Virus record (IMG/VR): IMGVR_UViG_3300025141_000016
Location: 62,001-126,000 of that record
DNA: 64,000 nt
Reading direction: 5' to 3' (one strand)
A program made the translations under genes and the position numbers. The notes under the pieces were generated by a model that saw nothing but the letters and a program-made list of their open reading frames with translations, did no database searches and had not been told where the DNA came from. The number at the start of each line of letters is the position of its first letter. The stretch's first letter is position 1. Shown in pieces: positions 15,387-64,000 of this stretch.

Positions 15387-15863
15387 ATGGGTAAGCCATC
15401 TCCCAAGCGGGTGGCCTCGGCCTCTGGGTTCTTGTCAGCGTACAAGAAGTGGACTCTCCCACACCTGATGGGGGATTCCCGCTACCGCTCATGGTGGGTG
15501 GACCGTAAGGGCAACCTCATTGAGATGAAAAATGACCCCTCCGGGTTGACCGAGGACACCCTGTTCGCGGCCAACACCGTTCTCTGGAAAGGGGATGCAG
15601 ATGACGGTCAGGGGGACATTCACTTTGAGTACCTGACGGTGAACCGAGATTTGCGAGGTCATGGCGTGGGGTCAGCGGTGTTGAAGGAGATTATCAAGCT
15701 GGCCGACAAGGCGGGTGCGTCCCTCTCACTGGAACCCGATGAGCGCGGTGGCCTCCTCTCTACCTCCCAACTTTTCGCGTGGTATCGAAGACACAACTTT
15801 GAAACGGTCATCCACCCAGAGTGGGGTGAGATTGAGGAGATGCTTATTCGCCAGCCCAGGTAG
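15387..15863 (+). CDS. GNAT-family acetyltransferase with N-terminal PSPKRVAS tag
   Basis: Acetyl-CoA motif A LTVNRDLRGHGVGSAVL; WYRRHNF (motif B-like). Confidence 0.75.
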   Translation: MGKPSPKRVASASGFLSAYKKWTLPHLMGDSRYRSWWVDRKGNLIEMKNDPSGLTEDTLFAANTVLWKGDADDGQGDIHFEYLTVNRDLRGHGVGSAVLKEIIKLADKAGASLSLEPDERGGLLSTSQLFAWYRRHNFETVIHPEWGEIEEMLIRQPR

Positions 15864-15900
15864 GCTGCGCGGTAAGGTAGGACGCACCGGAGAGACTCTG

Positions 15901-16683
15901 ATGAACTTGATCGCCTACCGCTCGTCTGTCGTGACCCAAGACACTTACGAAGCCATGCGCCGTCTGGAGATTGCGGCGAAGGATGAGGGGTCTTCTGTCA
16001 TCCAGTACGAGGGGGTCCATCGGAGCAGTTGCTCCTGGCGCGGAGTCGAGGATGAGCCGGGGCCAACCGAACTGCCCCCTCCGTTCTCGATGCGACCAGC
16101 CGGGAGAGAGGTTTATCTCCGTGTCGAAGTGGATGACCCCCTCCGGGGTCTTGCGCTTCTGTGGTCTTTGGCTGTCCCGTTGGGGTTCATGCCCTGGGAC
16201 CGCTATCCGCTCCCCTCTCCTACTTCCCATGTGTTCCACTACCCCGGCCCCTGGTCCTCTGTGGGAGATTTCCTGCACGGGGAAGGGCGTGGACACCTTT
16301 CCTGGCCTTCGATGTGTGTGGCAGCCCAATGCGAGGCTGGAACATGGGAAGGAGATCGCCTCTCCGAGAGGTCGGTCCAAACCCACCTTCACCGGCTCGG
16401 CATCCATTGTGGGCCTGTAGACGGACAGATCGGCACCCTCACCCTCTCCTCATTGAAGGCGTTGGGGCTCGGGGGGATGGGGCTGGAGGAGGCTTTGGAA
16501 GCCTTGACGCGCATGAAAGTCCCGAAGCCCCCAGCCATGGATCGGCAGCGAGGGCATGTCGTGTTGAATGATGTGTCTATGGAAGCCTTTTCATCAGGAG
16601 GCGTTCACACTGTGCGAACGCGCAACGGCTACTCCCTCACAGTGGATGGCCCCGGACGCTTGGTTTTGATGGTAGGTGATTGA
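15901..16683 (+). CDS. Protein with peptidoglycan-binding (PG_binding_1-like) domain
   Basis: VQTHLHRLGIHCGPVDGQIGTLTLSSL. Start moved to ATG 15901, which follows a GGAGA RBS. Confidence 0.55.
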   Translation: MNLIAYRSSVVTQDTYEAMRRLEIAAKDEGSSVIQYEGVHRSSCSWRGVEDEPGPTELPPPFSMRPAGREVYLRVEVDDPLRGLALLWSLAVPLGFMPWDRYPLPSPTSHVFHYPGPWSSVGDFLHGEGRGHLSWPSMCVAAQCEAGTWEGDRLSERSVQTHLHRLGIHCGPVDGQIGTLTLSSLKALGLGGMGLEEALEALTRMKVPKPPAMDRQRGHVVLNDVSMEAFSSGGVHTVRTRNGYSLTVDGPGRLVLMVGD

Positions 16684-17321
16684 TGGCAAGCCCAACGCTC
16701 TATTTCCCTGAAGGTGTCCCAGCCCACATTCGGCGTATCGTGGACCCAGACCAGATCCACAAGCACGTCCAAGAGGGTCTAAAGGGGCTGGAGAGAGACT
16801 GGAAGTCCTTGGTTGATGAGGCTGCGGAGATCGTCAATGGGGACCGACCTTGGTGGTTGCGGGTTTTCGGGGGCAAGACCGAGGTCAGTCCTGAATGGCT
16901 TGCGGAACGTCTCTACCAGCGTCCCCGCACATGGCCCACAGGCTTGTCGGCAGAGGATAAGGACATGCTTCGCCTCTTGCGGGCAACCCGTGATCTGGGG
17001 TCGCCCTTATCTTTGAAGGCCCCCAACCGCGAGATGCCTCCTCCCGAGGAGGACATGACAAAGGCGTTCAAGATGATGGCGAAGGACACGCGCCTATTCA
17101 TCTCATTCGGCCTGATGAAAGCCTATGAGGCGATGCTCAAAAATGTTGGGAAGGAGATTGAGGGTCTGTGCGAGGGGTTGCTTGGAGAGTCGTGTGAAGA
17201 CGATGCCGTCGATGTGGTCCATGCGGATGTGGATGCGGCCATCAAGACCAACCAGATCCAAGGCATGTCGCGAGACGGCGCACGTCTCCTCCAAGAGTTC
17301 TATCGCCTCGTCTACGTCTAA
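16683..17321 (+). CDS. Hypothetical protein
   Basis: About 212-aa ORF coupled to the upstream stop. Confidence 0.6.
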   Translation: MASPTLYFPEGVPAHIRRIVDPDQIHKHVQEGLKGLERDWKSLVDEAAEIVNGDRPWWLRVFGGKTEVSPEWLAERLYQRPRTWPTGLSAEDKDMLRLLRATRDLGSPLSLKAPNREMPPPEEDMTKAFKMMAKDTRLFISFGLMKAYEAMLKNVGKEIEGLCEGLLGESCEDDAVDVVHADVDAAIKTNQIQGMSRDGARLLQEFYRLVYV

Positions 17322-17375
17322 TGGGGGGTGGTAGGCACTCTGCGTCGGGTATTCGACGGGGAAGAGGAGTGCCCA

Positions 17376-18959: not shown

Positions 18960-18963
18960 AGGA

Positions 18964-18993
18964 GGGGGGTTCAACTCCCCCTCTGTTCCAGTA
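18964..18993 (+). promoter_or_regulatory. Class E promoter-like motif, variant TTCAAC-N14-AGTA
   Basis: GGGGGGTTCAACTCCCCCTCTGTTCCAGTA upstream of 19026. Confidence 0.5.
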
Positions 18994-19025
18994 GAGGGGG
19001 GGAACCCCAAAGGAAGGAGCCTGAC

Positions 19026-19966: not shown

Positions 19967-20016
19967 CGAGAGGTGAGAGGAAACATGCGACCACCATCCG
20001 ACAAGCGAGGGGAACG

Positions 20017-41853: not shown

Positions 41854-42156
41854 GTGGAGAAATCACCCTTACAATCCAAGAAGTTCCTCGCCTTCCTGCT
41901 CTCCGAGGTGACGTGGAAGATCATCATCATCGTCTGCGTGGTGAAACTCATTGATGACGCGGAAGGGGGACCACTCCTCCTCCACTGGGTCATGCTCACC
42001 GCAGTTCTCATCGCAGGGTTCATCGAGGCAGGATTCATTGGAGGACAAGCGTGGCTCGACAAGTACGTCCGTCTCGCCAAGATCACCACGGAGGCGGCAA
42101 CAGGAGCACCATCCCCCGACCCAGACCCAGAGGGTGCTGGCTCCAGTGATCGGTAG
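41854..42156 (+). CDS. Putative holin
   Basis: SKKFLAFLL N-terminus, two or more TM segments, directly before the endolysin. Confidence 0.6.
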   Translation: MEKSPLQSKKFLAFLLSEVTWKIIIIVCVVKLIDDAEGGPLLLHWVMLTAVLIAGFIEAGFIGGQAWLDKYVRLAKITTEAATGAPSPDPDPEGAGSSDR

Positions 42157-42179
42157 GTTCAACTATAGGAAGGTGAGTA

Positions 42180-42854
42180 GTGGCGAAGGCACTGTTGAAG
42201 GTTGGGTCGCAAGGCCCCAGCGTGAAGGAAGCCCAAAAACTGTTGGGTGTGGGAGCCGACGGCATCTTCGGCCCGAAGACCGAGGCTGCCACTAAAGCCT
42301 TCCAGAAGAAGCACGGGCTCACCGAGGATGGGATCATCGGACCCGCGACGTGGAAGGCCCTTGACCCCACCCCTGCCGTTGCGCCGCCGGACCCTCTCCT
42401 CTCGGGACCAGCCCTGGTGCTCCCGATCTCTCCGAGTCGGAAGCCGTACCTGACTGTGGGGTCACCGTATGGGCCTCGGACCTCTCCCATCACTGGGAAG
42501 GAGTCGTTTCACAGCGGGATCGACATCGGTGCCGCACAGGGAACACCCCTCATCGCTATCGGGTCGGGCCTCGTCGGCAAGGTCCAAGAACTCCATGCGG
42601 TCAACGGGAACGCAGTCTTCCTCGATGTGGACGGTTACCGAGTCTGCTACCTCCATCTCTACGAGATTCATGTGTCCGAGGGTGAGGCAGTCGTTGTCGG
42701 TCAGACCATCGGTTTGGTAGGCACCACCGGGCAAAGCACTGGACCCCACCTCCACCTGACCATCTATGACCCCAGCGGAAACCGTATCGATCCGGCCACG
42801 CTGTACCCAGCCGAATGGCTCCGCAACCGTCAGGGCGAACCTCTCTTGGGATAA
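42180..42854 (+). CDS. Endolysin: PG-binding domain plus M23 peptidase
   Basis: ADGIFGPKTEAATKAFQKKHGLTEDGIIGPATW; HSGID, YLHL, STGPHLH. Confidence 0.92.
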   Translation: MAKALLKVGSQGPSVKEAQKLLGVGADGIFGPKTEAATKAFQKKHGLTEDGIIGPATWKALDPTPAVAPPDPLLSGPALVLPISPSRKPYLTVGSPYGPRTSPITGKESFHSGIDIGAAQGTPLIAIGSGLVGKVQELHAVNGNAVFLDVDGYRVCYLHLYEIHVSEGEAVVVGQTIGLVGTTGQSTGPHLHLTIYDPSGNRIDPATLYPAEWLRNRQGEPLLG

Positions 42855-42862
42855 GGGCGGTG

Positions 42863-42877
42863 CAGTACCTACCCTAT
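42863..42877 (+). promoter_or_regulatory. Class L motif
   Basis: CAGTACctaccCTAT upstream of 42906. Confidence 0.5.
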
Positions 42878-42905
42878 TGATCCCCGAGGACAGGAGAGAT
42901 CGAAG

Positions 42906-43835: not shown

Positions 43836-44166
43836 CCCTCGGGTCATCCGGTCCCAGGCCACGGCACCACTTGGAGTCGGATTGCGCCCACTTGGTCCTG
43901 GCCGTACCTCGCTTACCTTTCTTCAACGCTCGCTCTGCCTTCATCGCGTCGGAGCGTCCCTCATAGGGTCCGTACACGGCACGGATCACCCACGGTCGGT
44001 GCTTGCTGGTGTACTTCCCCCCACCCACGATCTCTCCGTTGTGTTGGCGAAGCCGACGAGCCACGTCGGTCGTACAGCCGACGTAGTGGAACCCAGGCAG
44101 CGGGTGACCCCGTTTGCCGACCCTGCGTTCAAGGGACTGAATGACGTAGACCCAGTATTCGGCCAT
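43819..44166 (-). CDS. GIY-YIG nuclease, SLX1-like
   Basis: WVYVIQS...YVGCTTDVARRLRQHNGEIVGGGKYTSKHRPW...AMKAE; GGAGG RBS. Confidence 0.88.
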   Translation of the reverse strand: MAEYWVYVIQSLERRVGKRGHPLPGFHYVGCTTDVARRLRQHNGEIVGGGKYTSKHRPWVIRAVYGPYEGRSDAMKAERALKKGKRGTARTKWAQSDSKWCRGLGPDDPRVSPSR

Positions 44167-44175
44167 CACTACCTC

Positions 44176-44190
44176 CGGTCGGGAGTCTAT
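44176..44190 (+). promoter_or_regulatory. Class L motif
   Basis: CGGTCGggagtCTAT upstream of 44220. Confidence 0.5.
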
Positions 44191-44219
44191 ACCCCTCCTC
44201 CCCACAGAGGACCGTACCC

Positions 44220-45092
44220 GTGAACCACCCATCCCCCAGCCGTGTGGCCTCCCGCTGGATCAAAGCAGCCCCCGCCGTGGATCTTGATCCACGGAAGGTC
44301 TACTACCACGGGACACCCTCGGAGAAGGCGGGGAAGTCCATCCTCCGCTCTGGCATCGAACCGCCTGACCTTTCGACCCGCAAGGGTCCGCTTCGCCCTG
44401 TGGGCGGCAAGGTGTACCTGACTGACAAACTCTCCTATGGGGTCATCTACGCTCTCGGGGGGGCCGTGGCAGGACACGAGTATCCTGAGCGGCATTGGCA
44501 GGGCAGCGAGTGGGGATACCTGTTCGTGGTGCCGGGGAAGGCTCTCAAAGAAGTCCAGCCCGATGAAGATTCCGTGGGAGAGATGATCTCAAACTCGACT
44601 GGTCCCGGCTGGCTTGATGACTTGGCCGAAGAAATCCTTACGAAGAAACACCCAGCAGAACCCGAGCCTATCGCATTGTCCTATTCGTTCGACTTCGACA
44701 GCGACTTGAATGACAAGGCCAAAGAGCAGTTCTTTTCAGACACGGGGATTGACCCCAGTACGTTCGACTACCACGACGACCGAATCACCCTTGAAGGTTG
44801 GTTTTGGGACGAGGGTTCTTCCTACAACGAGGACTGGTTTTGGGAATATGAGCAAGGGAACCTGTACGACCTCGTGATGGACGGTGACTATGCCGCCTGG
44901 GCTGAAGCCGGAAAGATCCTACTTGGTGAGATGGACTCCGAACAGGAGTTGGAGTTGATCTCATTGGGGGCACACATCGCCCATGAAGGGAAGATCACCC
45001 CGACCGAGTGCTGGAAGATCCACAAGAGCAAGGCACCCCTGTTGAAGAAGAACGGGTCCAACTTCTTTCAGGTTGCGGAGCGGTGCCGATGA
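44220..45092 (+). CDS. ADP-ribosyltransferase-fold protein with N-terminal PSPSRVASRW tag
   Basis: YYHGT...ILRSGI...VYLT...Y.VIYA pattern of H-Y-type ART domains. Confidence 0.6.
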   Translation: MNHPSPSRVASRWIKAAPAVDLDPRKVYYHGTPSEKAGKSILRSGIEPPDLSTRKGPLRPVGGKVYLTDKLSYGVIYALGGAVAGHEYPERHWQGSEWGYLFVVPGKALKEVQPDEDSVGEMISNSTGPGWLDDLAEEILTKKHPAEPEPIALSYSFDFDSDLNDKAKEQFFSDTGIDPSTFDYHDDRITLEGWFWDEGSSYNEDWFWEYEQGNLYDLVMDGDYAAWAEAGKILLGEMDSEQELELISLGAHIAHEGKITPTECWKIHKSKAPLLKKNGSNFFQVAERCR

Positions 45093-45574
45093 CCAAGCCT
45101 TCCCCCAGCCGTGTAGCCTCCCGTTACCGAGAGGCCGCGATCACCTTTCGGGATGAGAGTTCGCCCCGTGTGCAGTACGCCCGACGGTTCTCACTGTGTG
45201 ACTCGGAAGCAGACCCACCCCGCAAGCGTGAGTACCTGTTCACGGATGAGTACCGAACCCACAACCGCAAGACATACAAGCGGTTGAAGAAGCCGGTGCT
45301 GGAGAGCCGTGGGGTCACCGACCCTTGCGACGTTGCCTACATCGACTACGGCGGGGGCGGGAAAGACCTGTATCTTCATCTGGTGATCACGCGAGAAGAC
45401 CACCGAGGGAAAGGGCTCGCCACAAGGCTACTCAAAGAGTTCTACTCCAAGAAGGTGCCCAAGGGAGCGGTTGTGCGCTGGGGTCGCATTATGAACCCAA
45501 CCAGCATGGCTCTGTTTGAGAAGATGAAGAAAGCACGCCCCGATGTGGTTCACATGGGCGGCAAGTTCTACTGA
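45089..45574 (+). CDS. GNAT-family acetyltransferase with N-terminal PSPSRVASRY tag
   Basis: LYLHLVITREDHRGKGLATRLL; NPTSMALFEK. Confidence 0.75.
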   Translation: MTKPSPSRVASRYREAAITFRDESSPRVQYARRFSLCDSEADPPRKREYLFTDEYRTHNRKTYKRLKKPVLESRGVTDPCDVAYIDYGGGGKDLYLHLVITREDHRGKGLATRLLKEFYSKKVPKGAVVRWGRIMNPTSMALFEKMKKARPDVVHMGGKFY

Positions 45575-46488
45575 CTTGCTCGTAGTCGCCATTCCCCTGC
45601 TACCTCGCGGATGAGGCGCAGCATCCTGGCGATGAGGTTGGGGTTGGACTTGGTGAGTCGCGCAATCTCGGACTTCCGGTAGCCCTGGACCATCAGGCCA
45701 ACGCACTCATGGGAGAGGGTGGCGCACATCCCTCGTTCGGTGGCCCGACTCCCGACCATGGTCATCAGCCCATCCGTGAGGGTTTGGAGGTCTGTCTCGT
45801 CTTCCTGGGAGGGGCCGACTATGGCTATGTCTGCACCCGCAACGTCCTCTATTACATCATCGAGCCCTGGGACTCCGAAGACCTCGTTGCGCTCCAGGCG
45901 AGAGTACCGACGACGGTAGTTGGATACGATGCACCCACACACCATGTGGACATAGTGCCCGAAGGAACTCTTGCGGGGGTCAAAAGGGCACTTCCCACCA
46001 TTCCGCACAAGTAGGCCCTTGTAAATCTCTTGCAGCACATCGTCCGGGTCGTAGCCGTACTTGATGACGCGCCGACCGTATCCCGCATAGAACAGTTTTC
46101 GGACCTCGTGTCCCCGCTTCTCCAAGTCAATCCCCAAGGGGGCAACGGGAGCCTCAATGGAGAGGACACGGCTGGTGCGGATCATCGCCTTGGGTTTGAC
46201 AACCGTGAGGTCAGGACGATTCTTGAAAAGCCGGAGGGTGTCAATCGCAGGCTCGGGGGGCCGATAGGTTCCCTGGCGGAAGTAGCGATCAAAAGTGACC
46301 TTGGGATCACGGTGATGAGATCGAGGCTTGGGGTCTTGGTTGACCAACGCCATGATGGTCTGTCGAGCGGAGGGGTATCTCACCGATCCGTTGGGCCACG
46401 AGACGAGAAAACCATTGGTATCGGCCAACACGCGATGACCCCCATGTTCTGTGCGTGCGTAAAAGGTTCCCTCTGTCCTCATCAACAT
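45568..46488 (-). CDS. Phage-encoded sigma-70 ECF-like RNA polymerase sigma factor with N-terminal extension
   Basis: Region 2: DPDDVLQEIYKGLL...FDPRKSSFGHYVHMVCGCIVSNYRRR. Region 4 HTH: GYRKSEIARLTKSNPNLIARMLRLIR. Confidence 0.75.
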   Translation of the reverse strand: MLMRTEGTFYARTEHGGHRVLADTNGFLVSWPNGSVRYPSARQTIMALVNQDPKPRSHHRDPKVTFDRYFRQGTYRPPEPAIDTLRLFKNRPDLTVVKPKAMIRTSRVLSIEAPVAPLGIDLEKRGHEVRKLFYAGYGRRVIKYGYDPDDVLQEIYKGLLVRNGGKCPFDPRKSSFGHYVHMVCGCIVSNYRRRYSRLERNEVFGVPGLDDVIEDVAGADIAIVGPSQEDETDLQTLTDGLMTMVGSRATERGMCATLSHECVGLMVQGYRKSEIARLTKSNPNLIARMLRLIREVAGEWRLRASQ

Positions 46489-46585
46489 ACGATCTTCCTC
46501 CTCATCAGCGTAGATAGTGGTATCACAGTACCGACTTCCAGGGAAACCTTACCCCCTCATACAAGCCCTCAAAGGGGCGATGTGT

Positions 46586-46600
46586 CGATAGTGGTCTTAT
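46586..46600 (+). promoter_or_regulatory. Class L motif
   Basis: CGATAGtggtcTTAT upstream of 46676/47482. Confidence 0.55.
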
Positions 46601-46675
46601 ACCCCTCTGCGGGCAGAGAGGTGCGGACCATGTGCGCGAAATGCAGTAACGTACTGATCGGTTCCTGGCTTCCTG

Positions 46676-47479
46676 TTGGGGTACACCGATATGTATGAGA
46701 AAAACGCCGGAATCAAGGAATGGATGGGGTGGATGGCACAGCCTCTTTCCGTCATCCTGAAAGGGCACAAAGACCTCATCTACGGACCCGTGGATGGCCT
46801 GATGGATGAAGTGATCCGTCAGATCGCTCCCCAGATTGTGAAGGCCATTGGAGAACGAGAGATCGATGAGGACGTGGAGGAGTTTCTGGAAGGTGCCCAG
46901 GAAGGCCGTTTCGATGCCCTTTCAGGCTACCTTGCTGACCCTGACCTCACGGCCCCCGACGATGAACAGGCGGGTTACGACTGGGGGTTTTCTCATGCCG
47001 AGGAATGGAAGGGAAAGACTCTCCCCACCGCTGTCGAGCGAAAGGTGGTGCAGGAGCAGATCAAGGAGTTCCGAAGCCGTGTCACAGAAGAAGTGGTCAT
47101 TGACCTCATGGAAAAGACATGGCACGCCCTATCACCCTCCCACACCATCAAGGCCATCATCAGGGCCGTCAAGAAGCATGGTTGGAAACTCGGTATCGGG
47201 TTTGTGCTCTTTGAGATCGTTGAGCACGCCCTCTTGCCAGCCGTGATGATCAAGCTGACGGGCAACCCCCACTGGGCTATTTTGGGCACCCTCCCCATCG
47301 GTGAGATCATCTACGCCATCGCCATGCGTGTGTTGGGCAGGGCAGACAAGAACTTGGACAAGTTGGACGAGGACGGTCACTTGGATTGGTATGAGGCCAA
47401 GTACGGCCCGGTGAGACTGGCCTCCCAACGTCGCCCTTCGTGTGAGCAAGTCGCATACCGCTACTGCACAGGGAGGTAG
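46676..47479 (+). CDS. Hypothetical protein with hydrophobic hairpin and C-terminal PSCEQVAYRY tag
   Basis: Hydrophobic region LGIGFVLFEIVEHALLPAVMI...; start uncertain (ATG 46691). Confidence 0.65.
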   Translation: MGYTDMYEKNAGIKEWMGWMAQPLSVILKGHKDLIYGPVDGLMDEVIRQIAPQIVKAIGEREIDEDVEEFLEGAQEGRFDALSGYLADPDLTAPDDEQAGYDWGFSHAEEWKGKTLPTAVERKVVQEQIKEFRSRVTEEVVIDLMEKTWHALSPSHTIKAIIRAVKKHGWKLGIGFVLFEIVEHALLPAVMIKLTGNPHWAILGTLPIGEIIYAIAMRVLGRADKNLDKLDEDGHLDWYEAKYGPVRLASQRRPSCEQVAYRYCTGR

Positions 47480-47481
47480 CC

Positions 47482-49344
47482 ATGAGCAGTTGCCCCATTC
47501 GGTCACAGGCATACGGCGGCCTCCCTTCCGTCGGGGGCTTCGGATCCATCATGGAGTTCGGAGTCGGGCTTGGGACCATCTTTGAGGCCGCTCATTGTCT
47601 ACTTGGCTCCCTCGGCAAGAATCTGGGGAGAGAGGATGACTGGGTGGCGATGCTCGGTGTCGAGAAAGGCCATCTGAACGAGGAAGCTGGGATCATCAAG
47701 GACGCCCTCCGTGAGTATGCTCGACCTGTCTACCGCGAGCAGATGCTCGACTTCTCCCAGTACAAGCCCGAGTGGCAGGAGAGGATGCGGGAGTCTGCGG
47801 AGAGGCAGGTCGAGGACATTCAACAGGCTGGACCCAAGTTGGCCTCTCTCGCCAAGGGTAGGGCATCGGCTTTTGTGGAAAATCTGGAAACGGAGGATGC
47901 CCCTGTCGAGTGGGTGAACACCGTTGAGGCCACCTACCTCATGGTGATCGCGTTGGCCGAGGCTGCGGTGAAGGCCGTGAATGACTGGCCCGACTCTATG
48001 GGGAACCCCTTTGCGGACCCCAAGGTGACCCGAGCCGCTGGGCTCATGGAAAAGCATCTCGCGGCTCTGTTCCGATGGGGATCCTCCCAGCGGGTTGCGC
48101 GTCGATACGCTTCCCAGAAGTTCCAGTGGACGCGCTCTCCCCTCTCCTACAACGTGAGCGGGACTGCGAAGCGGCTCGGACTCCTCGACTCGGAAGCAGG
48201 TGACCCCGATGAGTGGGAGACTTACTTCGCGGAAACCCAAAAGGAACTCCGCAAGAAGAACCGCCAGCGGTACAAAAAGCCTCGGTACGAAACAATCCCT
48301 GGTGCGGAACCTGGGACGGTTGCCTTCCTCGACTACCACGAGTTCCCAAACTACTACGGGGACGGGAAACTCTACCTTTACCTCGACTATGTATCGACTC
48401 GGCATGACCGGCTCGGTCAGGGGCACGCTCGGAAGCTGTTTGAGGAGATGCTGCGGAAGCACGGCAAGGACTCCCACTACGATTTCGGACGCATCGCGCA
48501 CAAGGCGGTCTACAAGATTTTCCGCGACTGGCAGTCGCGGGGGATCAACGTCCGGGGAAAGAACTGGGGCGGCTACACCGACGAGGAAGTCGGCCTCCGA
48601 AGCGCCTCTGCCGTCCGGGTCGTTGCTCGCTTTGAAAATCTCCGAAAAACAGACCGGCACACCGTCTACCACGGGACAGGCATCGGCCAACTCCCCCAGT
48701 TGATCAATGGGTTTGATGCAACCAAGATGAAAGGCCGAAGCTACAACACGCGCCCCCACAAAGGGATGTTTGTCTCACCCGACCTTGCCACTGCAAAGAA
48801 GTTCGGTCAGGTGATCCTTGAACTGGAAATCCCCGCCCGTTTCCTGCATGGGCGCGATTGGGCCGGAAAACCCTTACACCCCAAACTACAAGAGGAAGCG
48901 GAAGGGATGTTCCCCGAGTCGTTCCGCCCCGACCTCTCTTACATGCTGGAAGCCGGGGAACCACAGGCATTGGTTCTTGGCCTCGTTTCGCCCAGGCAGA
49001 TCCGCCGCGTGCTTTATGACGGGAAATGGTACTCCCGTAAAGACTTCCTCGCCCTCGACTGGGAAGACCTCAAAACCCCTCGCCGTCGCCCTATGCGCGA
49101 TCTCGGAGTGGATGTTTCTGATCCCAGCCTTTCGTGGGAGGACTTCATAGAAGCCAGCGCAACTCTCTTTGAGTCACCCGTCGCCCGCATCCAAAAAGTG
49201 CTTGGTCGTTGGGTGGAGCAAGGGAAGAACGCCCGCTGGGTGGCGAAGCAGCTTGAAGTGGTGTGGGAACCTCTCACCGCTCGTCGCTATGCCGAACGAT
49301 TCTTCGGGACGCAAGACAGGGAGGCACAGAGGGGGATGCCGTGA
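47482..49344 (+). CDS. Multidomain protein: helical domain plus GNAT plus ART-like domain, separated by RVxxRY/F motifs
   Basis: SSQRVARRYA; LYLDYVSTRHDRLGQGHARKLF (GNAT); ASAVRVVARF; VYHGT...GMFVSPDLATAKKFG..ILELEI (ART). Confidence 0.7.
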   Translation: MSSCPIRSQAYGGLPSVGGFGSIMEFGVGLGTIFEAAHCLLGSLGKNLGREDDWVAMLGVEKGHLNEEAGIIKDALREYARPVYREQMLDFSQYKPEWQERMRESAERQVEDIQQAGPKLASLAKGRASAFVENLETEDAPVEWVNTVEATYLMVIALAEAAVKAVNDWPDSMGNPFADPKVTRAAGLMEKHLAALFRWGSSQRVARRYASQKFQWTRSPLSYNVSGTAKRLGLLDSEAGDPDEWETYFAETQKELRKKNRQRYKKPRYETIPGAEPGTVAFLDYHEFPNYYGDGKLYLYLDYVSTRHDRLGQGHARKLFEEMLRKHGKDSHYDFGRIAHKAVYKIFRDWQSRGINVRGKNWGGYTDEEVGLRSASAVRVVARFENLRKTDRHTVYHGTGIGQLPQLINGFDATKMKGRSYNTRPHKGMFVSPDLATAKKFGQVILELEIPARFLHGRDWAGKPLHPKLQEEAEGMFPESFRPDLSYMLEAGEPQALVLGLVSPRQIRRVLYDGKWYSRKDFLALDWEDLKTPRRRPMRDLGVDVSDPSLSWEDFIEASATLFESPVARIQKVLGRWVEQGKNARWVAKQLEVVWEPLTARRYAERFFGTQDREAQRGMP

Positions 49345-49446
49345 ACTGGGTGGCGGCCAACTTCAATCAGTACCGGAAGTTTCTGACCTGCTGACTCACC
49401 GGGCGGAACCTAACCTCCCAATAAAAAGGTAGGTTTTTCTTCTGGA

Positions 49447-49481
49447 GGGGGGTTCAACTCGGGCCGGTATCTCCGTATAGG
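49447..49481 (+). promoter_or_regulatory. Class E promoter
   Basis: GGGGGGTTCAACTCGGGCCGGTATCTCCGTATAGG. Confidence 0.8.
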
Positions 49482-49553
49482 CGTGAACCGTAGGGTGACC
49501 TACGCTCTTTACTCACCCCTTCCATGCTCCATTGAGGAGCCCCGGAGATCGTC

Positions 49554-51500: not shown

Positions 51501-51877
51501 TGTACGTCCGAGAAATCGAGCATGAGGATGGGTCAGTAACGGTCGAGAAATACACCCCTGGGAGCCCCCAGGAAGCCATGGCAGCTTTCAGCGACCTCTG
51601 GGCGATGGAATCCACCCATGGCCCCTACACCATATCAACGGTCTTTCTTGCGCTTGGCCCGTGCCCTTATGAGACGATGGTGTTTGTCGGGGATTCCAAT
51701 GCCGACAGAGAGATGGACCGCTACAGCACCCGAGCAGGAGCGATCAAGGGGCACCACCGGATCTCGTGTAAGTGGCGGGACATTTTCACGGCTAACCTTG
51801 CCCTGTTGGGGGAGGGTTTCTGGCTTCCTGTTGGAGAAGATTCTGCGGAGAAAACACCCACCACCGCTGAACTTTAG
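51500..51877 (+). CDS. Hypothetical phage protein (YETMVF...RYST...GH type)
   Basis: ISTVFL...YETMVF...RYSTRAGAIKGH; TGATG coupling. Confidence 0.65.
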   Translation: MYVREIEHEDGSVTVEKYTPGSPQEAMAAFSDLWAMESTHGPYTISTVFLALGPCPYETMVFVGDSNADREMDRYSTRAGAIKGHHRISCKWRDIFTANLALLGEGFWLPVGEDSAEKTPTTAEL

Positions 51878-51884
51878 TGCCCCA

Positions 51885-51919
51885 GGGGGGTTCAACTCGC
51901 CCCCCTATCTCCGTATAGG
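51885..51919 (+). promoter_or_regulatory. Class E promoter
   Basis: GGGGGGTTCAACTCGCCCCCCTATCTCCGTATAGG. Confidence 0.8.
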
Positions 51920-51977
51920 AGTGAGGCCCCCATCTATACCCTTTTCCAGCCCTGCATCGAGCAGGCAAGGAGCCCCT

Positions 51978-52469
51978 ATGACCTACCGAAATGTCGAGTA
52001 TCCCGAGGCTGTTGCCGCAGCTAATGAGGGACTTCCCTTCACGATTTGCTGGGAGTTCTCTGGTGCCAATGGCAAGAACAAATCCGGCACGTCCGACAAG
52101 TTCTGGCTGATTGAGCGCACCTGCAAAAACGGTGAGGTGTACCGACGGTTCGGCAAGAAAGGAGCCAACGGCCAGCGTCAACTGATTCCGAGTGTCGCGA
52201 GCGGGCTGCTCCAAGGTCGGGGAAAGGAAAAAAAGGGGTACGTCCTCTCCTTCGCTTCCGTTGTCGCTCCCGCTGGGCAGTCCGACCACCCCGACCCGAG
52301 GGTAAGGCCCCTGATCTCCAAGATGCTCCCTGCCCCTTTCTGCCACATCCGCATGGTCCATGAGGCACCGATTGGGACATGGAACGCCTATGACAGCGAA
52401 GGGAACGTCGTGGTCACCCTGGCTGCGGACACGGCAGCAGAAATCATCGCAACCTACACGCTGGCATAG
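51978..52469 (+). CDS. WGR-like domain protein with shared C-terminal LPxPF domain
   Basis: SDKFWLI...VYRRFGKKGANGQ...KEKKGY; AAGGAG RBS. Confidence 0.7.
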   Translation: MTYRNVEYPEAVAAANEGLPFTICWEFSGANGKNKSGTSDKFWLIERTCKNGEVYRRFGKKGANGQRQLIPSVASGLLQGRGKEKKGYVLSFASVVAPAGQSDHPDPRVRPLISKMLPAPFCHIRMVHEAPIGTWNAYDSEGNVVVTLAADTAAEIIATYTLA

Positions 52470-52477: not shown

Positions 52478-54526
52478 ATGTCCAAGAATCTCGACACCCT
52501 TGCTCTGGCCCAGCGTCTTCGTGAAGCCTCCGCTGCCTACTACAGCGGGGGCAAGCCCTCTATGTCCGATGCCGAGTTCGATGCACTGGAAGCCGACCTC
52601 CGCAAGCGTGACCCCAAGCATCCTGCGCTCGCAGAGGTGGGTGCGCCTCCGTCCTCCGGCTGGCCCAAGGTCACCCATCCCATCACCATGGGATCGCTGG
52701 CGAAGGTTCAGAACAATGCCGAGTTGGACTCCTGGGTCACCCCTCTTGTCCGCAACAGCAGAATCGGGGGATGGAACTCTAATGGGTCCAAACTCCGCGA
52801 AGGGAACCAGGGCTGGTGCGTCACCGAGAAGATGGACGGGATTTCCGTTCTCCTGACATACACGGACGGTGTTCTTGTCCGAGCCGCCACCCGTGGTGAC
52901 GGAACCACGGGGGAAGACATTACGCGCAACGTGCGAGTAATGAAGGGTGTCCCGGCCACGCTGCCAACGCTCCCTCGTGGGGACGTTCATATCCGTGGCG
53001 AGATCATCTGCAAGAAGTCCGACTTTCTCCGAGAGTTCGCGGCAGATGGGTACAGCAACCCCCGCAACACGGCTTCGGGAACCTCCAAGCGTCATAGCGG
53101 ATGGCAGAAGTGCCGCCACCTGACGGTCTACGCCTACAACCTGTTCGGAGCCGGTGTCCCTGCCGATGCCGACAAGCGCACTTCGGAGATGATTACCCTG
53201 GCGAAATGGGGGTTCAATGTCCCCTGGACCGAGGCGACCGCGTTTGAGGGAGGTGGGGGAACCACCTCGACCGACCGTATCCAGGCTTTCCACGACCTCT
53301 ACACCAGCGGTAAGCGTGAGTCGCGAGACTACGAGATAGACGGTCTGGTGGTGGAGGTGAACGACACGGCTTCCCGCGAATCCCTTGGCACGACCCCAGA
53401 TGGTATGCGTCCGAAAGGCGCAGTGGCGTACAAGTTCCCGCATGAAGCCCAGCAGACCACCCTGCGAAACATTCGTTGGCAGGTCGGCACGACGGGTCGC
53501 GTGACCCCTGTGGCCGAGTTCGATGCTGTGGACCTTGCGGGCGCGTCGGTCAAACAGGCCAGCCTCCACAACCTCGCCAACATCGAGAAGTTGACTAACG
53601 GTGCTGGGTTCATGGAGAACGCCACCATCCTCGTATCTCGGCGCAACGACGTAATCCCTTATGTCGAGGCGTTGCTGTCCCAGCATCCCCAGGAAGATGA
53701 GTTTGAGGCACCCCACGACTGCCCCGAGTGTGGGTTCGACTTGGCGATGGACGGGGAATACCTCGTCTGCGGTAACGGAGGCGACGGCCCAGGTGATCTG
53801 GGGTGCCCCGCACAAATCCTTGGTGGTATCCGACGCTGGATCAAGAAGATCGGTGTGCTCCACTTCGGGGACCGGCTCATTGAAGCGGTTGTCGAGGCAG
53901 GGATGGTCAAGACCATCCCCGACCTTTATCGGCTGGACGAACAAGCGATGGCTGCGCTTTCGCTCAACGGTCGTCGTGTCGGTGGGGCTGCAAAGCGGGC
54001 TCTGGGTTCACTTCATGCTCACAAGACCCTCCCCCTCGATACCTTCGTGGGATCGTTGGGCATCCCGTTGTGTGGTCGCCGCATGGTGGGGATGCTCATG
54101 GATGCTGGTATCTGTGACCTCAACATGCTGTCCGAGGCTACCGAGGCCCAACTGGCTCTCGCCCCTGGATTCGGCGTGGACAAGGCCAGGGCATTCCGGG
54201 TCGGGTTCGATGAGTGCAGGGACACCATCATTGGCCTGTACGCCGTCGGAGTCACCGTGGCTCCCCCCCAGCCCAAGACCGCTACCTCGGGGGTCCTCTC
54301 CGGTGTGTCCGTCTGCATGACAGGCTTCCGTGACAAGTCCATGGAGAACGCCATCAGTGCTGCCGGGGGGACTGTGAAGTCCAGCGTCAGCAAGGCTCTC
54401 GGATTGTTGGTCGCCAAAGACCCCAACAGCACGTCGGGGAAGGCGAAGAAAGCGCGGTCCCACGGCATCGAGGTCATTGACCCAGCCGAGATGTGGACAC
54501 GCCTGGGGGGTCAGGCCCAGCCTTGA
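52478..54526 (+). CDS. ligA: NAD+-dependent DNA ligase
   Basis: AYY...SDAEFD, EKMDG, TRGDGTTGEDIT, RGE, NPRN, DGLVV, AVAYKF, CPEC...C...C Zn finger, HhH, BRCT (VCMTG). Confidence 0.96.
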   Translation: MSKNLDTLALAQRLREASAAYYSGGKPSMSDAEFDALEADLRKRDPKHPALAEVGAPPSSGWPKVTHPITMGSLAKVQNNAELDSWVTPLVRNSRIGGWNSNGSKLREGNQGWCVTEKMDGISVLLTYTDGVLVRAATRGDGTTGEDITRNVRVMKGVPATLPTLPRGDVHIRGEIICKKSDFLREFAADGYSNPRNTASGTSKRHSGWQKCRHLTVYAYNLFGAGVPADADKRTSEMITLAKWGFNVPWTEATAFEGGGGTTSTDRIQAFHDLYTSGKRESRDYEIDGLVVEVNDTASRESLGTTPDGMRPKGAVAYKFPHEAQQTTLRNIRWQVGTTGRVTPVAEFDAVDLAGASVKQASLHNLANIEKLTNGAGFMENATILVSRRNDVIPYVEALLSQHPQEDEFEAPHDCPECGFDLAMDGEYLVCGNGGDGPGDLGCPAQILGGIRRWIKKIGVLHFGDRLIEAVVEAGMVKTIPDLYRLDEQAMAALSLNGRRVGGAAKRALGSLHAHKTLPLDTFVGSLGIPLCGRRMVGMLMDAGICDLNMLSEATEAQLALAPGFGVDKARAFRVGFDECRDTIIGLYAVGVTVAPPQPKTATSGVLSGVSVCMTGFRDKSMENAISAAGGTVKSSVSKALGLLVAKDPNSTSGKAKKARSHGIEVIDPAEMWTRLGGQAQP

Positions 54527-59739: not shown

Positions 59740-59747
59740 GGCTGGTC

Positions 59748-59762
59748 CGGTATCTGGCCTAT
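59748..59762 (+). promoter_or_regulatory. Class L motif
   Basis: CGGTATctggcCTAT upstream of 59797. Confidence 0.6.
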
Positions 59763-59796
59763 GGTTCCCGACCAGTATGACTGACGGGAGCCAACC

Positions 59797-61896
59797 ATGA
59801 CGACAGGGTGGGAACCAGTTGACGGCACATTCCCTTGGCCTCCGGCCAACGGTACGGCCATGTCTGCGTTCCACAGTTCGGATACCGACATTCGTTGGGA
59901 CGATCCCTCTACCCTCATCACAGGCCCCACCACTCCCTCTACACGGGCTACGGTGTCGGTCACGGTGGCGGGGATTCCTGACGTACTCACCGCCGCTACA
60001 GCGTCCTTTACAGTGGTCGGGGCTCCCATCACGGCAGGGGACACCATCGAGGTAGGTGGGGTTGTCGTGACTGCCGTTGCCGGTGTGCCTGGGGTGGACG
60101 AGTTCGACGGTTCCTCTGGTGTGGTGGCGACCGTTGCCACCAACATCGCTGCTGCCCTCAACGATGGCAGCGTCGGAGGATGGGGTATCGCCACCGCCGA
60201 GGCTGCACTCGGGGTCATCACCCTTACCGCAGGAACGGCAGGCGAGGCTGCAAACAGCACGACTCTTTCGTCGGACTCGGCTCTCATCACCGCATCTGGG
60301 AGCACGTTCTCTGGTGGTGCTGACCCCGACACCCTTACCATCGGGGGCGAGGTGCTGTCAGCGGTTACCACACGCACAGCGGGGGGCATGGACTTCGCAG
60401 TTGGCCCCTCCAACTTTGACACTGCCCAGAGCATCACCGATGCGATCAACGACTCGGACAACACGTTGGGGTTCATCAGCGCCACCGTATCGGGTGACAT
60501 AGTGCTCATCGCCGCGTTCCTCGACGGGACGATGGGCGATGGGATCATCATCTCGACCACCAATACGACCGCCCTGGTGACCAGTGACTCGCAGACCACC
60601 GGGGGAGAGGGAGTTGCCTGCACTGGGAAGTCCAATACCGTGTGGGAGATCCTTGGGGTCAACGTCTACCGGTCGGACACTGGGGAGCGAGGCCCCTATT
60701 TCCGGGTGAACAGCATCCCTGTGATGACCAACTTCTACCGGGATCGCACCGATGTTGTGGAAGTGACCGGCGAGGGGATCGCTTGGGCTACGGGGTGGGT
60801 CTTCCGAGGGAGTGCGCCGAACCAGCCCAATGTGTGGCGGCTCCGGGTCAAAAACCATGAGATGGTCAAGCGAACCGGGAACGCGGTTGCGGCTGACTCC
60901 TCCTTCGATGTGGAGGTTTACATCGACGGAGCACGGGTGCCGGTTGCCCAGGTATCGGGGTCAGTGGGGGAGATCACTCTCGACACCATGCCTGTTTGGA
61001 ACCAAGGCACGGATTCGTGGGATGAGTTCACGGCCCCCACAGACACCAGTTCGGTGACGGTCAGCTACTTCTGGAAGCGTGGGAACAAGCTGGTCAACAC
61101 CCTCGACAAACGCTCCAAGGTCTTCTATCGACTCACCACCGTTGCCATCGACACGTCGAGCACGACGGGCTTGATCGAGACACCGATGGGGTACTCGGAA
61201 CCCATCTCTCCGATGAACAGCGAGAAGATGGACTACATCTGGCGTGAGGCCATCCGGCGCAACCGCTGGATTCTGGAGCAGGGGGGCGAGAGGGTCAAGT
61301 TGTTCATCCGGCGTATCACTGGGGTCAAGTGCGACTGCATCTGGGATCCCAGGCTGGAGGAATACTCCCAGCAACCCCTGAACTCTTGCGTGAAGTGCTA
61401 TGGCACTGGCTGGCGCGGGGGGTACGAAGGCCCCATCGACATTATCGTCGGACCAGACGACACCGAACGGCGAGTGACGCAGACGGCCAATGGACGGCAG
61501 TTGCAGCATCAGTACGAGGTCTGGATTGGACCGACCCCCACGGTCAGCCAACGGGACTTCATCGTCAAGCAGAACGGCGAACGCTACAGCATTGGGCCTA
61601 CCCGCCGCACCCAGGTCCGTGGGGTCATCCTCCAACAGTCCTTCCAGATCGGCTACCTCGACACCACCGACATTCGGTACAAGGTGCCGATGGGCCAGTT
61701 GGAACGACTGCCTTGGCCCCAGACTCGGTACACTCGACCGGAAGACGCGCCCTGCAAGACCGCTGAACCGTATCCGGTGGGGTACGACTACCAAGCATCC
61801 CCCATGGGGACAGAGGTCAACAAGATCGATGATGCTCGTGAGCAGCGGGGTCGGACTCCCGTGTGGGCCAACATCACTTATGGCGGGGGTGGGTAA
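59797..61896 (+). CDS. Putative virion structural protein (head-tail/neck-like) with C-terminal Zn-finger domain
   Basis: T/G/A-rich duplicated domain (TITV/IGG...F...TAxxIxxAIND); C-terminal CDC...CVKCYGTG, RDFIV. Confidence 0.6.
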   Translation: MTTGWEPVDGTFPWPPANGTAMSAFHSSDTDIRWDDPSTLITGPTTPSTRATVSVTVAGIPDVLTAATASFTVVGAPITAGDTIEVGGVVVTAVAGVPGVDEFDGSSGVVATVATNIAAALNDGSVGGWGIATAEAALGVITLTAGTAGEAANSTTLSSDSALITASGSTFSGGADPDTLTIGGEVLSAVTTRTAGGMDFAVGPSNFDTAQSITDAINDSDNTLGFISATVSGDIVLIAAFLDGTMGDGIIISTTNTTALVTSDSQTTGGEGVACTGKSNTVWEILGVNVYRSDTGERGPYFRVNSIPVMTNFYRDRTDVVEVTGEGIAWATGWVFRGSAPNQPNVWRLRVKNHEMVKRTGNAVAADSSFDVEVYIDGARVPVAQVSGSVGEITLDTMPVWNQGTDSWDEFTAPTDTSSVTVSYFWKRGNKLVNTLDKRSKVFYRLTTVAIDTSSTTGLIETPMGYSEPISPMNSEKMDYIWREAIRRNRWILEQGGERVKLFIRRITGVKCDCIWDPRLEEYSQQPLNSCVKCYGTGWRGGYEGPIDIIVGPDDTERRVTQTANGRQLQHQYEVWIGPTPTVSQRDFIVKQNGERYSIGPTRRTQVRGVILQQSFQIGYLDTTDIRYKVPMGQLERLPWPQTRYTRPEDAPCKTAEPYPVGYDYQASPMGTEVNKIDDAREQRGRTPVWANITYGGGG

Positions 61897-62474
61897 TGCC
61901 AGCGCCAAGGCTGTTCCACACTACATCATGGAGGGAAGCTGAAAAGGCGTTGAAGACAGGCAAGATCACCAGCATCTCTCCCTTCATCTCCTTGTCCGAG
62001 AAGCCCCTGTTCGGGGGAGACATTCGCCACGGCGACGTGGCTCTGGTCCTCGATGCGGGTGGGATCAAAGGTCAACTGGTCAAGGTGGAGTACACCGAGC
62101 GTTGGGCCGAAGCCAACCCCGAGCAGACTTCCTACATCGCAGGCGAGGGGTGGCGAGAGCAGTTCACTTACCCAGAGGACTGCGTTGACGAGGAAGGCTG
62201 GGAAGACGACGAGTGCATGGAACGGGCGTACCACGAGGCCGAGGTTGACTCTTTCCTTTGGAAATCCGACGAAGCTGAATGGCTCACGAAGCGGGAGGGC
62301 GCTCCTCTCTCTGTAGGCGGGGCAATCACGGGGCTTCTCGTCCCCGATGAGCGCAGCAAGGGACACGCGGAATCACTCATGGGGGGTCTTGGGCTGGACT
62401 TGCCGGTATTCATAGGGAGAGGAGCGTCGGCTGTGCGTGTTGCAAAGCGGTTTCTTCTGGGAGATGCCGCATGA
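61896..62474 (+). CDS. ART-fold-like protein with C-terminal ASAVRVAKRF tag
   Basis: LFHTT...ISLSE...VALVLD...DEAEW. Confidence 0.5.
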   Translation: MPAPRLFHTTSWREAEKALKTGKITSISPFISLSEKPLFGGDIRHGDVALVLDAGGIKGQLVKVEYTERWAEANPEQTSYIAGEGWREQFTYPEDCVDEEGWEDDECMERAYHEAEVDSFLWKSDEAEWLTKREGAPLSVGGAITGLLVPDERSKGHAESLMGGLGLDLPVFIGRGASAVRVAKRFLLGDAA

Positions 62475-62767
62475 CTGCTACTGAAATCCTGAACCAACTC
62501 CAGCAACACAACCCCGAGGCGCTGCTCTTGGAGCCCCGCGAGGTCTACGACAAGGCTCTGGTTGGGGTCACGAACACCCCTGACGACCATTGGCCGCGCA
62601 CTAACGGCATCTGGGTAGCGGTGTATGACGAGGAACTGTGCCTGGAAGCCATCATGGAATGGCATGAGTGTGGTTACAGCGATGCCGCTGACTGGTTCGG
62701 CCACAACACTTCCGGGGCATGGGCTGGGGAGGGCACTCCGACGTTCCGCTCACACGGCGAGGAATGA
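62471..62767 (+). CDS. Conserved-type phage hypothetical protein
   Basis: YDKALVGV...AVYD...DAADWFGHNTSGAWAGEGTP. Confidence 0.7.
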   Translation: MTATEILNQLQQHNPEALLLEPREVYDKALVGVTNTPDDHWPRTNGIWVAVYDEELCLEAIMEWHECGYSDAADWFGHNTSGAWAGEGTPTFRSHGEE

Positions 62768-62788
62768 CCCAGAGCGCCCCCCTCGGGG

Positions 62789-62803
62789 CGGTACTTCCTT
62801 TAT
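62789..62803 (+). promoter_or_regulatory. Class L motif
   Basis: CGGTACttcctTTAT upstream of 62830. Confidence 0.55.
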
Positions 62804-62829
62804 GGGAAGGTAGGGTGGCAGGAGTGTGA

Positions 62830-64000
62830 ATGGAATCCCTACCCAAAATGCAGGCCGTTGTAGATCGGCTTCATATAGACGGGGTGTTGTGGCCTCACAT
62901 GGATGTGTATTTCGACTACCAGCGGGTTCCCGCAAAGTTGAAGGATCATGCCGCATGGTGGGTGTATAGAGGCTCGCACAAAGATATGCTGTTCAAGGCT
63001 TGGCGTGCGCTCCCCCCAGAACAGAAGGAAGCCCTCGACATCGCCAACGAAGCCGCCCATCAAGGATCTACGCTGACCCTCTACCGAACCCCCACCGGAA
63101 CAGAGCACACCGATCATGCAGGGGCCTCCTTCACGACGGACAAGAGCTTGTGGGGCGACGAAGGCTACGCGGTGCGTGTGCCCGTGGGTGATGTGTTGAT
63201 CTCCTACAAGACTCCGGGCTTCGAGGACATCTTCAACAACCAACGATACGGGCACGAGAAGGAGGTCATCCTCAAACCGACCGCATCAGCCGCTCGGGTC
63301 GCTTCCCGGTACATTCGGGCAGGTGGGTCGTTTCCTGCTATGCAATCCGCTGTGGACCGGCTCTACAATGAGGGTGTCATCGACTACCCCATCGAGGTCC
63401 GGTACTTCGGCCCCAGTGGTAGTGGGAACGTCGAGATTCAACTCCTCAAAGACGGTCGCCCCGGTGACTACGCTGGTCACTTCTTCACGTCCAAGCACGC
63501 GGATGGGTGGGAATCTCCGAGCACCTTGCGGGGGATCTCCGATCCATGCTTGAAGGCATACCGTAAGGTGCGGCGCAAGAACAAAGGCGCAGGTCTATGG
63601 TCAGTCCAATGGGCTTTCCTGAAGGACAAGGCCCTGTGGGGTCACGGGCTTGGCAAGATGGCCTACGAACAGATCCTCAAAGACGCGGGCAAGTTTGGGG
63701 CTGTCGTGTTCCCTGCATGGTGCGCCACAGGAGGGTCCACTACTCCGATGGCACAGCGAGTGTGGGACTCCGTAGGGAAACGCCATAGCACCGAAGGGGT
63801 GGTTGTCATCCCCAAGAACCTCCGGGTCGCTTCGACGGTAGGCGTTGCGACTCGGTACGCGAACCGCACACTCACCCAACAGACCCAACGGCTGGAGAGT
63901 GCCGTCACAGCCTTCATGGACGCTCTGCGGGAAACGGGGCGAGCCATCGGAGGGTGGAGGCGCAAGCCAATGCCCCCAGGCACCCCGGCTGCTATGCGGG
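62830..64000 (+). CDS. Multidomain protein (3'-truncated): R-S-E ART-like domain plus GNAT-like domain, separated by RVASRY motifs
   Basis: Absent from the ORF track (no stop in the window). Translated by eye: MESLPKMQAVVDRL...LTLYR...ASFTT...HEKEVIL-KPTASAARVASRYIRA...LWGHGLGKMAY...TPMAQRVWDS...RVASTVGVATRYAN. Confidence 0.75.
   Translation, partial: MESLPKMQAVVDRLHIDGVLWPHMDVYFDYQRVPAKLKDHAAWWVYRGSHKDMLFKAWRALPPEQKEALDIANEAAHQGSTLTLYRTPTGTEHTDHAGASFTTDKSLWGDEGYAVRVPVGDVLISYKTPGFEDIFNNQRYGHEKEVILKPTASAARVASRYIRAGGSFPAMQSAVDRLYNEGVIDYPIEVRYFGPSGSGNVEIQLLKDGRPGDYAGHFFTSKHADGWESPSTLRGISDPCLKAYRKVRRKNKGAGLWSVQWAFLKDKALWGHGLGKMAYEQILKDAGKFGAVVFPAWCATGGSTTPMAQRVWDSVGKRHSTEGVVVIPKNLRVASTVGVATRYANRTLTQQTQRLESAVTAFMDALRETGRAIGGWRRKPMPPGTPAAMR

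Follow-up and report, generated by a model that had tools for sequence, protein, structure and literature searches.

We describe here, in a marine huge (jumbo) phage of ~297 kb, a set of modular proteins that carry ADP-ribosyltransferase (ART)-like and GNAT-like domains and share a short junction peptide, hereafter called the tag. The DNA analysed is a stretch of 64,000 nucleotides (the window) corresponding to bases 62001–126000 of the single 297,104-bp virus record IMGVR_UViG_3300025141_000016 (CheckV completeness 67%); open reading frames (ORFs) and coordinates were read under genetic code 11, the sequence was used unaltered, and positions preceded by "genome" are those of the whole record. 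The interpretation that we favour, with a probability of about 0.6, is that these proteins are tag-bounded modular effectors acting on host macromolecules, in which the tag would be both a shared processing or packaging signal and the point at which modules are exchanged. It builds on the folds of the domains, their catalytic-type residues, the enrichment of the tag and the homology breakpoints located at or beside it.

ART-like and GNAT-like domains of the window

A sequence-only reading of this DNA had listed four ART-like and four GNAT-like domains. All four GNAT-like domains are backed by sequence evidence (two by Pfam, one by BLAST and one by family alignment). The ARTs fared less evenly: 44220 and the first domain of 62830 (we name proteins by the window position at which their genes start) gave confident AlphaFold models and the C-terminus of 47482 is backed by hhalign, whereas 61896 shows only a moderate ESM-Atlas resemblance. 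The two signatures then recognized are indeed present, H-type in 44220 and 47482 and R-S-ExE in 62830, as are the three arrangements, namely adjacent genes (44220/45089), a GNAT-ART fusion (47482) and an ART-GNAT fusion (62830). The features are as follows:

15387..15863, + strand: stand-alone GNAT-like protein of 158 amino acids (aa) (Acetyltransf_1, 24.0 bits)
44220..45092, + strand: H-type ART-fold protein, 290 aa, GTG start (AlphaFold2 model, family alignment)
45089..45574, + strand: GNAT-like protein, 161 aa (Acetyltransf_1, 23.4 bits)
47482..48084, + strand: N-terminal domain of the 620-aa 47482 protein, aa 1–201 (family alignment)
48091..48108, + strand: junction tag 1 of the 620-aa protein, RVARRY, aa 204–209 (read from sequence)
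48094..48615, + strand: GNAT-like middle domain of the 620-aa protein, aa 205–378 (BLAST paralogue of 45089, aligned motif A)
48616..48633, + strand: junction tag 2 of the 620-aa protein, RVVARF, aa 379–384 (read from sequence)
48634..49344, + strand: H-type ART-like C-terminal domain of the 620-aa protein, aa 385–620 (hhalign; YHGT ... GMFVSP ... LELE)
61896..62474, + strand: probable H-type (DarT-like) ART-fold protein, 192 aa (ESM-Atlas model only)
62902..63279, + strand: R-S-ExE ART domain, aa 25–150 of the 1005-aa 62830 protein (AlphaFold2, invariant residues)
63295..63312, + strand: junction tag RVASRY, aa 156–161, between the ART and GNAT domains of 62830 (read from sequence)
63313..63864, + strand: GNAT-like second domain of 62830, aa 162–345 (family alignment)

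The structure predictions run for 44220 and for the first domain of 62830 supported an ART fold in both. The 44220 protein belongs to a family of 93 homologues, many of them on contigs of 100–600 kb, in which P114-D-E-D117 never varies and H30 and Y66 hardly do. Its confident AlphaFold2 model (predicted local distance difference test, pLDDT, 93.9) places H30 in strand 27–32, Y66 in strand 64–68 and the PDED residues 114–117 after strand 111–114, which is the H-Y-[EDQ] layout of ARTs (strand-1 His, strand-2 aromatic, acidic residue near strand 5). In Foldseek, every top row is an ART (Tpt1, Arr and the A chains of pertussis and cholera toxins among them), with weak scores (E 0.04 and above), and the family profile touches Tpt1 by sequence (E 0.005). 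On the strength of its model, 44220 is confirmed as an H-type ART fold, closest to KptA/Tpt1. The model of the first 62830 domain, which has ~30 relatives, reaches pLDDT 84.6; in this family, R86, G98, S100, E143 and E145 do not vary and Y85 and H142 hardly do. The domain displays the attributes of the R-S-E clade (an ART fold with an N-terminal helical part and the residues R, S-x-[ST] and E-x-E), and its top VIA-align structural rows are filled by ExoS, C3, iota-like, Certhrax, C2-I and VIP2, the model confirming it as an ART of the C3/VIP2/ExoS group. By sequence, no Pfam family was found among its 33 members, nor any PHROG match (Alt/Mod included) or PDB match.

For the C-terminus of 47482, the evidence comes from profile alignment. 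Its aa 380–620 align by hhalign with a Pfam-positive ART-PolyVal paralogue (genome 195141–196478) with a probability of 93.8% and E 1.7e-7, YHGT lying over YHGT and GMFVSP over GIFLTP; the match to the 44220 family is weaker (E 2.9e-4), and the same region is 39% identical to aa 311–573 of the protein encoded at genome 231505–235248. Its motif set is made of YHGT, an F replacing the Y, and LELE. By hhalign, this domain is a relative of ART-PolyVal but not a member by Pfam's rule. In the case of 61896, the ESM-Atlas model (predicted template-modelling score, pTM, 0.64) has template-modelling (TM) scores of 0.52–0.54 to DarT and ART-PolyVal clusters, making this protein a probable ART-fold protein. 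A relation to the 44220 family, considered as a candidate, was rejected given that hhalign showed none, and neither Pfam, nor the DarT scan, nor tblastn against GenBank phages provided sequence-level support; the same tblastn search gave no match for the 47482 ART. More generally, direct searches of the ART candidates in Pfam, PHROG, NCBIfam and PDB sequences yielded nothing usable. The window ARTs match no Pfam ART model, giving nothing with ART-PolyVal (PF18760) even at E up to 10, and a scan of the genome found PF18760 in only two proteins, both outside the window. The DarT profile scan of the phage's own genome was blank, and pattern scans of IMG/VR with 44220, 62830 and the 47482 N-terminal domain found no relatives.

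The window ends inside the 62830 gene, which in full runs to 65847 and encodes 1005 aa. Past the window, the protein contains a zincin-like region (HELGH at aa 577) and then a further ART-like stretch. Its aa 811–890 (window coordinates 65260–65499) and aa 626–709 of another protein (L004) form a paralogous pair that resembles strands 1–2 of ART-PolyVal, with Arg replacing His (VYRA ... WVTPS). A metagenomic relative (P0120, 608 aa, L020:3316-5142) shows the reverse partner choice, a 62830-type GNAT followed by an H-type (DUF3990-like) ART.

The GNAT-like domains of 15387 and 45089 exceed the curated cut-off of Pfam Acetyltransf_1 (20.7 bits). Neither the middle domain of 47482 nor the second domain of 62830 passes this model directly in a Pfam search; the former is 34% identical to the 45089 protein (BLAST, E 1e-13) and the latter (aa 160–345) has 31 relatives in a full HMMER search. 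We aligned the 62830 GNAT domain with its relatives and the three other GNAT domains of the window (alignment A5, 35 sequences), and 20 of the 35, three of them the window's other GNAT domains, match Acetyltransf_1. Motif A (R/Q-x-x-G-x-G/A, which binds the acyl-CoA pyrophosphate) reads RGHGVG, RGKGLA and WGHGLG, and the 47482 domain retains the glycines as LGQGHA, such that the G-x-G-x-[GA] core is aligned in all four domains and the leading R/Q position is variable. Paralogues occur at genome 28689–30617 (aa 208–357) and genome 128323–130137 (aa 437–588) for 15387, and inside genome 190585–195144 and 231505–235248 for the 62830 GNAT. The GNATs fall into three types by sequence and lean weakly towards RimI (cf. 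PMC5512222). As far as alignments can tell, their membership of the GNAT superfamily is supported.

The N-terminal domain of 47482 matches nothing in Pfam or PDB. It has 14 homologues, each with a different downstream cargo, and H38-C39, H64 and E67-E68 are invariant in this family; judging from its sequence, it could be a carrier, an adaptor or a peptidase.

The junction peptide and module exchange

The tag has the consensus [PA]S[AP][SA]-RVA-[SAR]-R-[YFW] and is common to all six candidate proteins, in degenerate form in 15387 (PSPK-RVASAS, aa 4–13). Besides the junctions of 47482 and 62830, it lies at the N-termini of 44220 (RVASRW core at 44241–44258) and 45089 (RVASRY core at 45110–45127) and at the C-terminus of 61896 (RVAKRF core at 62436–62453). 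In its strict form, the tag is found in 22 places in + strand ORFs, whereas shuffled proteins have 0.30 on average (300 shuffles, maximum 3), and 27 copies are found in + frames against 2 in − frames. As read from their positions, ~6 copies are within 15 residues of a start codon, two are C-terminal and the rest lie between domains, each domain junction having one. Tag copies keep the peptide while their codons differ synonymously, which argues that the peptide itself is under selection. It is also present in metagenomic homologues (13/16, 9/93 and 8/65). A literature search for the letters of the tag found no paper, and the peptide appears to be undescribed.

Comparison by blastn with the syntenic stretch of a related 286-kb phage provided the breakpoints. 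The two phages are 78–91% identical along this stretch, and the identity is broken at tags or within ~10 codons of them. In 44220, homology ends 54 nucleotides (nt) into the gene, just after the tag, and the next 1282 nt are replaced; the counterpart in the relative has kept the tag (its first 24 aa are 67% identical) with a different cargo. In 47482, the relative carries an inserted block of 1222 nt with a PAP2 domain, which falls between window positions 48085 and 48087, a few nucleotides before tag 1 (core 48091), and homology stops at 48626, inside tag 2, just after which the relative's protein ends, the ART module that follows tag 2 being missing from it. Other relatives of the 47482 protein bear its three parts separately and in other company. 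Two gene pairs, 44220/45089 and genome 190585/195141, overlap as ATGA, with the downstream gene starting with the tag (fission at the tag); the ATG of 45089 overlaps the stop of 44220 and this gene is translationally coupled to the ART gene. In 62830, the first 20 residues (62830–62889) duplicate the start of the protein's own GNAT module (63328–63387) and that of a stand-alone GNAT relative (P0119), a pattern that suggests the footprint of an ART module insertion. Regions resembling PAP2, NUDIX, zincin and ParB are found in proteins of the same set, mostly as weak sub-threshold matches. Repeated shuffling of ART+GNAT pairs, as first proposed from the sequence, is correct as to the shuffling, which the homology breaks with the 286-kb phage and the recombined relatives show directly, but the unit that moves is a single tag-bounded module rather than a pair.

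Contigs near-identical to 44000–49500 are present in several marine runs beyond the likely source samples and, because of this, an assembly chimera in this region is unlikely. A contig joint that skips 44157–45902 (run X3) was left unused, as it rests on 21 letters only. The 286-kb relative also carries, on the opposite strand, a GIY-YIG homing-endonuclease gene (L013:6244-6591) that mostly overlaps the start of the swapped 44220-type gene (L013:6645-8069) and may drive cassette exchange. An M23 peptidase with a peptidoglycan-binding domain (gene 42180–42854, block 42124–42881) is missing from this otherwise syntenic relative.

Proposed mechanism and competing explanations

In the mechanism that we propose, the ARTs would transfer ADP-ribose from NAD+ and the GNATs an acyl group from acyl-CoA, and the modules would act on host macromolecules early in infection, like the T4 Alt/Mod ARTs and the phiKMV Rac GNAT. 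Each module is bounded by the tag, with natural variants gaining, losing or swapping modules at or beside it and genes splitting at it to give fission products that start with the tag. The tag itself would serve all modules as a signal for processing or packaging, much as T4 internal proteins have capsid-targeting and cleavage signals; on this view, fused and split arrangements would yield the same mature products. Whereas the folds, the catalytic-type residues, the tag enrichment and the breakpoints are shown here, enzymatic activity, targets, packaging and cleavage are the elements of this mechanism that we infer. By analogy with T4 Alt/Mod and phiKMV Rac (PMC7824862), a role in host takeover or anti-defence is a reasonable proposal. 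A much more tentative extension, which we find possible but doubtful, is that a whole phage clade uses RVAxRY as a universal address and processing tag, behind which a module of any kind would be packaged, cut free and injected with the DNA; if true, the phage would run its effectors as plug-ins, in the manner of polymorphic toxins, ART and GNAT being the favourite cargo.

Several points weigh against processed and packaged ART and GNAT effectors. Scans of the phage's own genome found neither a prohead protease of the Pfam S77/S78 families nor a match to MPTase-PolyVal. The conserved stretch of ~10 residues exceeds typical maturation-protease sites and would suit a docking motif equally well. 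The AlphaFold2 models made here cover 44220 and the 62830 ART domain only, and two distant huge phages carry a 44220-type ART with no detectable GNAT within ~4 kb.

In the main rival, the enzymes would be made in the infected cell and remain unpackaged, and the tag would dock them to one common hub, such as RNA polymerase, the ribosome or a phage scaffold. The length of the tag and its location at termini and linkers, as in hub-binding motifs, its position in a flexible N-terminal stretch that the 44220 model gives with low confidence and the lack of an S77/S78 maturation protease all speak for docking, which we nevertheless consider unlikely; the chemistries involved are unrelated (ART and GNAT, and the weaker zincin-, NUDIX- and ParB-like regions) and would hardly all need the same host hub, and docking by itself leaves the fission, insertion and loss of modules at or beside the tag unexplained. 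A different question is what the modules modify. Given the KptA- and DarT-like matches, nucleic acids are a real possibility, and ART and GNAT modules directed mainly at nucleic acids or defence signalling (by KptA/DarT-like ADP-ribosylation of RNA or DNA ends, or by acetylation of aminoacyl-tRNA) would agree with the 44220 family matching RNA 2'-phosphotransferases best, by structure as well as by profile, with the resemblance of 61896 to DarT, and with the NUDIX-like region of one protein of the set and the PAP2 domain in the relative's version of 47482. The R-S-ExE domain, however, resembles the protein-targeting C3/VIP2/ExoS enzymes, and the weak lean of the GNATs towards RimI (PMC5512222) also points away from such targets, leaving this option with rather low odds.

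The tag might also be a neutral scar without function, either a linker copied along with duplicated modules or a microhomology used in recombination. Breakpoints do fall at the tag, and several copies have in common ~20 nt of 80–90% identical GC-rich DNA that short-homology recombination could use. Other copies, however, retain the peptide through different codons, and the tag persists both N-terminally in single-domain proteins and among divergent metagenomic homologues and joins modules that are mutually unrelated, so that we regard a scar as improbable. Even less credible is that the domains are inactive pseudo-enzymes or structural parts of the virion: although Pfam ART models miss the ARTs of the window and the GNAT domains are short, the catalytic-type residues show little or no variation across 33 and 92 sequences and the motif A glycine core is kept in all GNAT domains.

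Genome context, known systems and significance

Every long ORF of the window is on the + strand, and its guanine-plus-cytosine (GC) content is 0.59. Among its products are SNF2 and DnaB helicases, a primase and a family A DNA polymerase whose sequence shares 47% identity with the enzyme of a 485-kb uncultured phage. A giant beta-helix tail-fibre-like protein, an NAD-dependent ligase, an M23 lysin, a baseplate J protein and a sheath-initiator-like protein are encoded as well. The 44220–47482 cluster comes after the baseplate genes and 15387 after giant tail-like proteins, other tagged genes being scattered in the genome; this placement beside baseplate and tail genes resembles the position of Alt in T4-like phages described in PMC5512222. 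Between the tail-fibre-like giants, the protein encoded at 7735–8628 combines an S-adenosylmethionine-methyltransferase-like N-terminus with a match to the third domain of the flagellar-hook protein FlgE. A weak match to the WGR domain, which is associated with poly(ADP-ribose) polymerases (PARP), is found at 51618–52469 (E 0.003), directly upstream of the NAD-dependent DNA ligase (52478–54526). Genome positions 1–99 recur exactly at 292248–292346, 4.86 kb from the record end; a 4.86-kb terminal repeat was rejected since these 99 nt are all of the genome start that recurs there.

At the scale of the genome, at least seven ART-like and at least eight GNAT-like domains can be recognized, the ARTs being of at least four sequence types (H-Y-E/D KptA-like, ART-PolyVal-like, DarT-like and minimal R-S-ExE). 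ART-GNAT linkage is found in four cases in this genome, as well as in gp205 of phage Tunturi_5 (see below) and in the literature (PMC5512222). Tagged or paralogous multi-domain proteins also have NUDIX-, ParB- and M91-like regions, all below the Pfam cut-offs, the NUDIX-like one only just (19.7 bits against 21.1). The polyvalent attribute of at least two unrelated enzymatic domains per polypeptide is present in 47482 (unfamiliar domain, GNAT, ART), 62830 (ART, GNAT, zincin-like) and genome 231505–235248 (ART, ART-PolyVal, GNAT). In our reading, the phage encodes ~17 putative modular polyvalent-type effector proteins, with ART and GNAT as their commonest modules.

In polymorphic toxins, short junction motifs (VENN in CdiA, PxxxxDPxGL in Rhs) mark the point at which variable enzymatic modules are exchanged. 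The tag likewise marks a module exchange point between relatives; unlike those motifs, it occurs many times per protein and also at N- and C-termini, in a phage, and no immunity genes were seen. The packaged internal proteins of T4 and head proteins of phiKZ carry short shared N-terminal peptides and repeated cleavage motifs (consensus LxE or S/A/G-x-E). The tag is also a short shared peptide, but its consensus differs and no protease was identified here.

Among the closest described systems are the polyvalent proteins of phages and conjugative elements, which mix unrelated enzymes (Iyer, Burroughs, Anand, de Souza and Aravind 2017, PMC5512222). In that work, ART is the commonest protein-modifying domain, GNAT typically stands beside ART in the same polypeptide, and the proteins are encoded near late genes and predicted to be packaged and injected. 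The genome studied here resembles these systems in having two proteins with true Pfam ART-PolyVal domains, and departs from them in that the window ARTs fall outside PF18760 and MPTase-PolyVal went undetected in the genome. The word "linker" is absent from the text of PMC5512222, and the sentences examined there with "cleavage" or "processed" describe no motif like the peptide shared by junctions and termini. Work from the same group connects the ARTs and GNATs of jumbo phages with the hijacking of host transcription (PMC7824862). T4 Alt, ModA and ModB are R-S-E phage ARTs and Alt, encoded near baseplate genes, is packaged, injected and modifies host RNA polymerase (PMC5512222, PMC7824862). 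The 62830 ART is of the same R-S-E type, but no PHROG or Pfam match connects it with them and it is much smaller, with only 14 residues from R to S, and fused to a GNAT and a zincin-like region. For another phage GNAT, phiKMV Rac, acetylation of a host transcription subunit has been proposed (PMC7824862); the GNATs described here, by contrast, form three separate small families and are mostly fused or coupled to ARTs.

A cultured counterpart exists in the 309-kb jumbo myovirus Tunturi_5 of Tunturiibacter (PP885688; PMC11924767). Its gp205 (853 aa, L017:4494-7055) contains a 44220-like ART (30% identity, E 7e-19) and, at its C-terminus, a GNAT scoring 22.9 bits (cut-off 20.7), with a second ART-like stretch and a ParB-like one between them, read by eye only. 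It has no RVAxRY tag, but its domain borders bear [KR][TS]AA four times, and its annotation rests on structure-based prediction only. The pairing of ART and GNAT in phage polyvalent proteins is hence already known; new here are two ART families that Pfam lacks, an ART of R-S-E type within a polyvalent-type protein, the scale of the arsenal and the tag.

The ART and GNAT effectors of phage polyvalent proteins have been predicted but hardly studied at the bench. This genome provides two well-modelled ART families beyond Pfam, one of them present in many huge phages, and a clear natural experiment in module exchange with a short peptide marking each exchange point. Should the tag prove to act in packaging or cleavage, the way in which huge phages build up and renew their injected arsenals would be explained, and searching for the tag alone would be a handle for finding unfamiliar effector modules.

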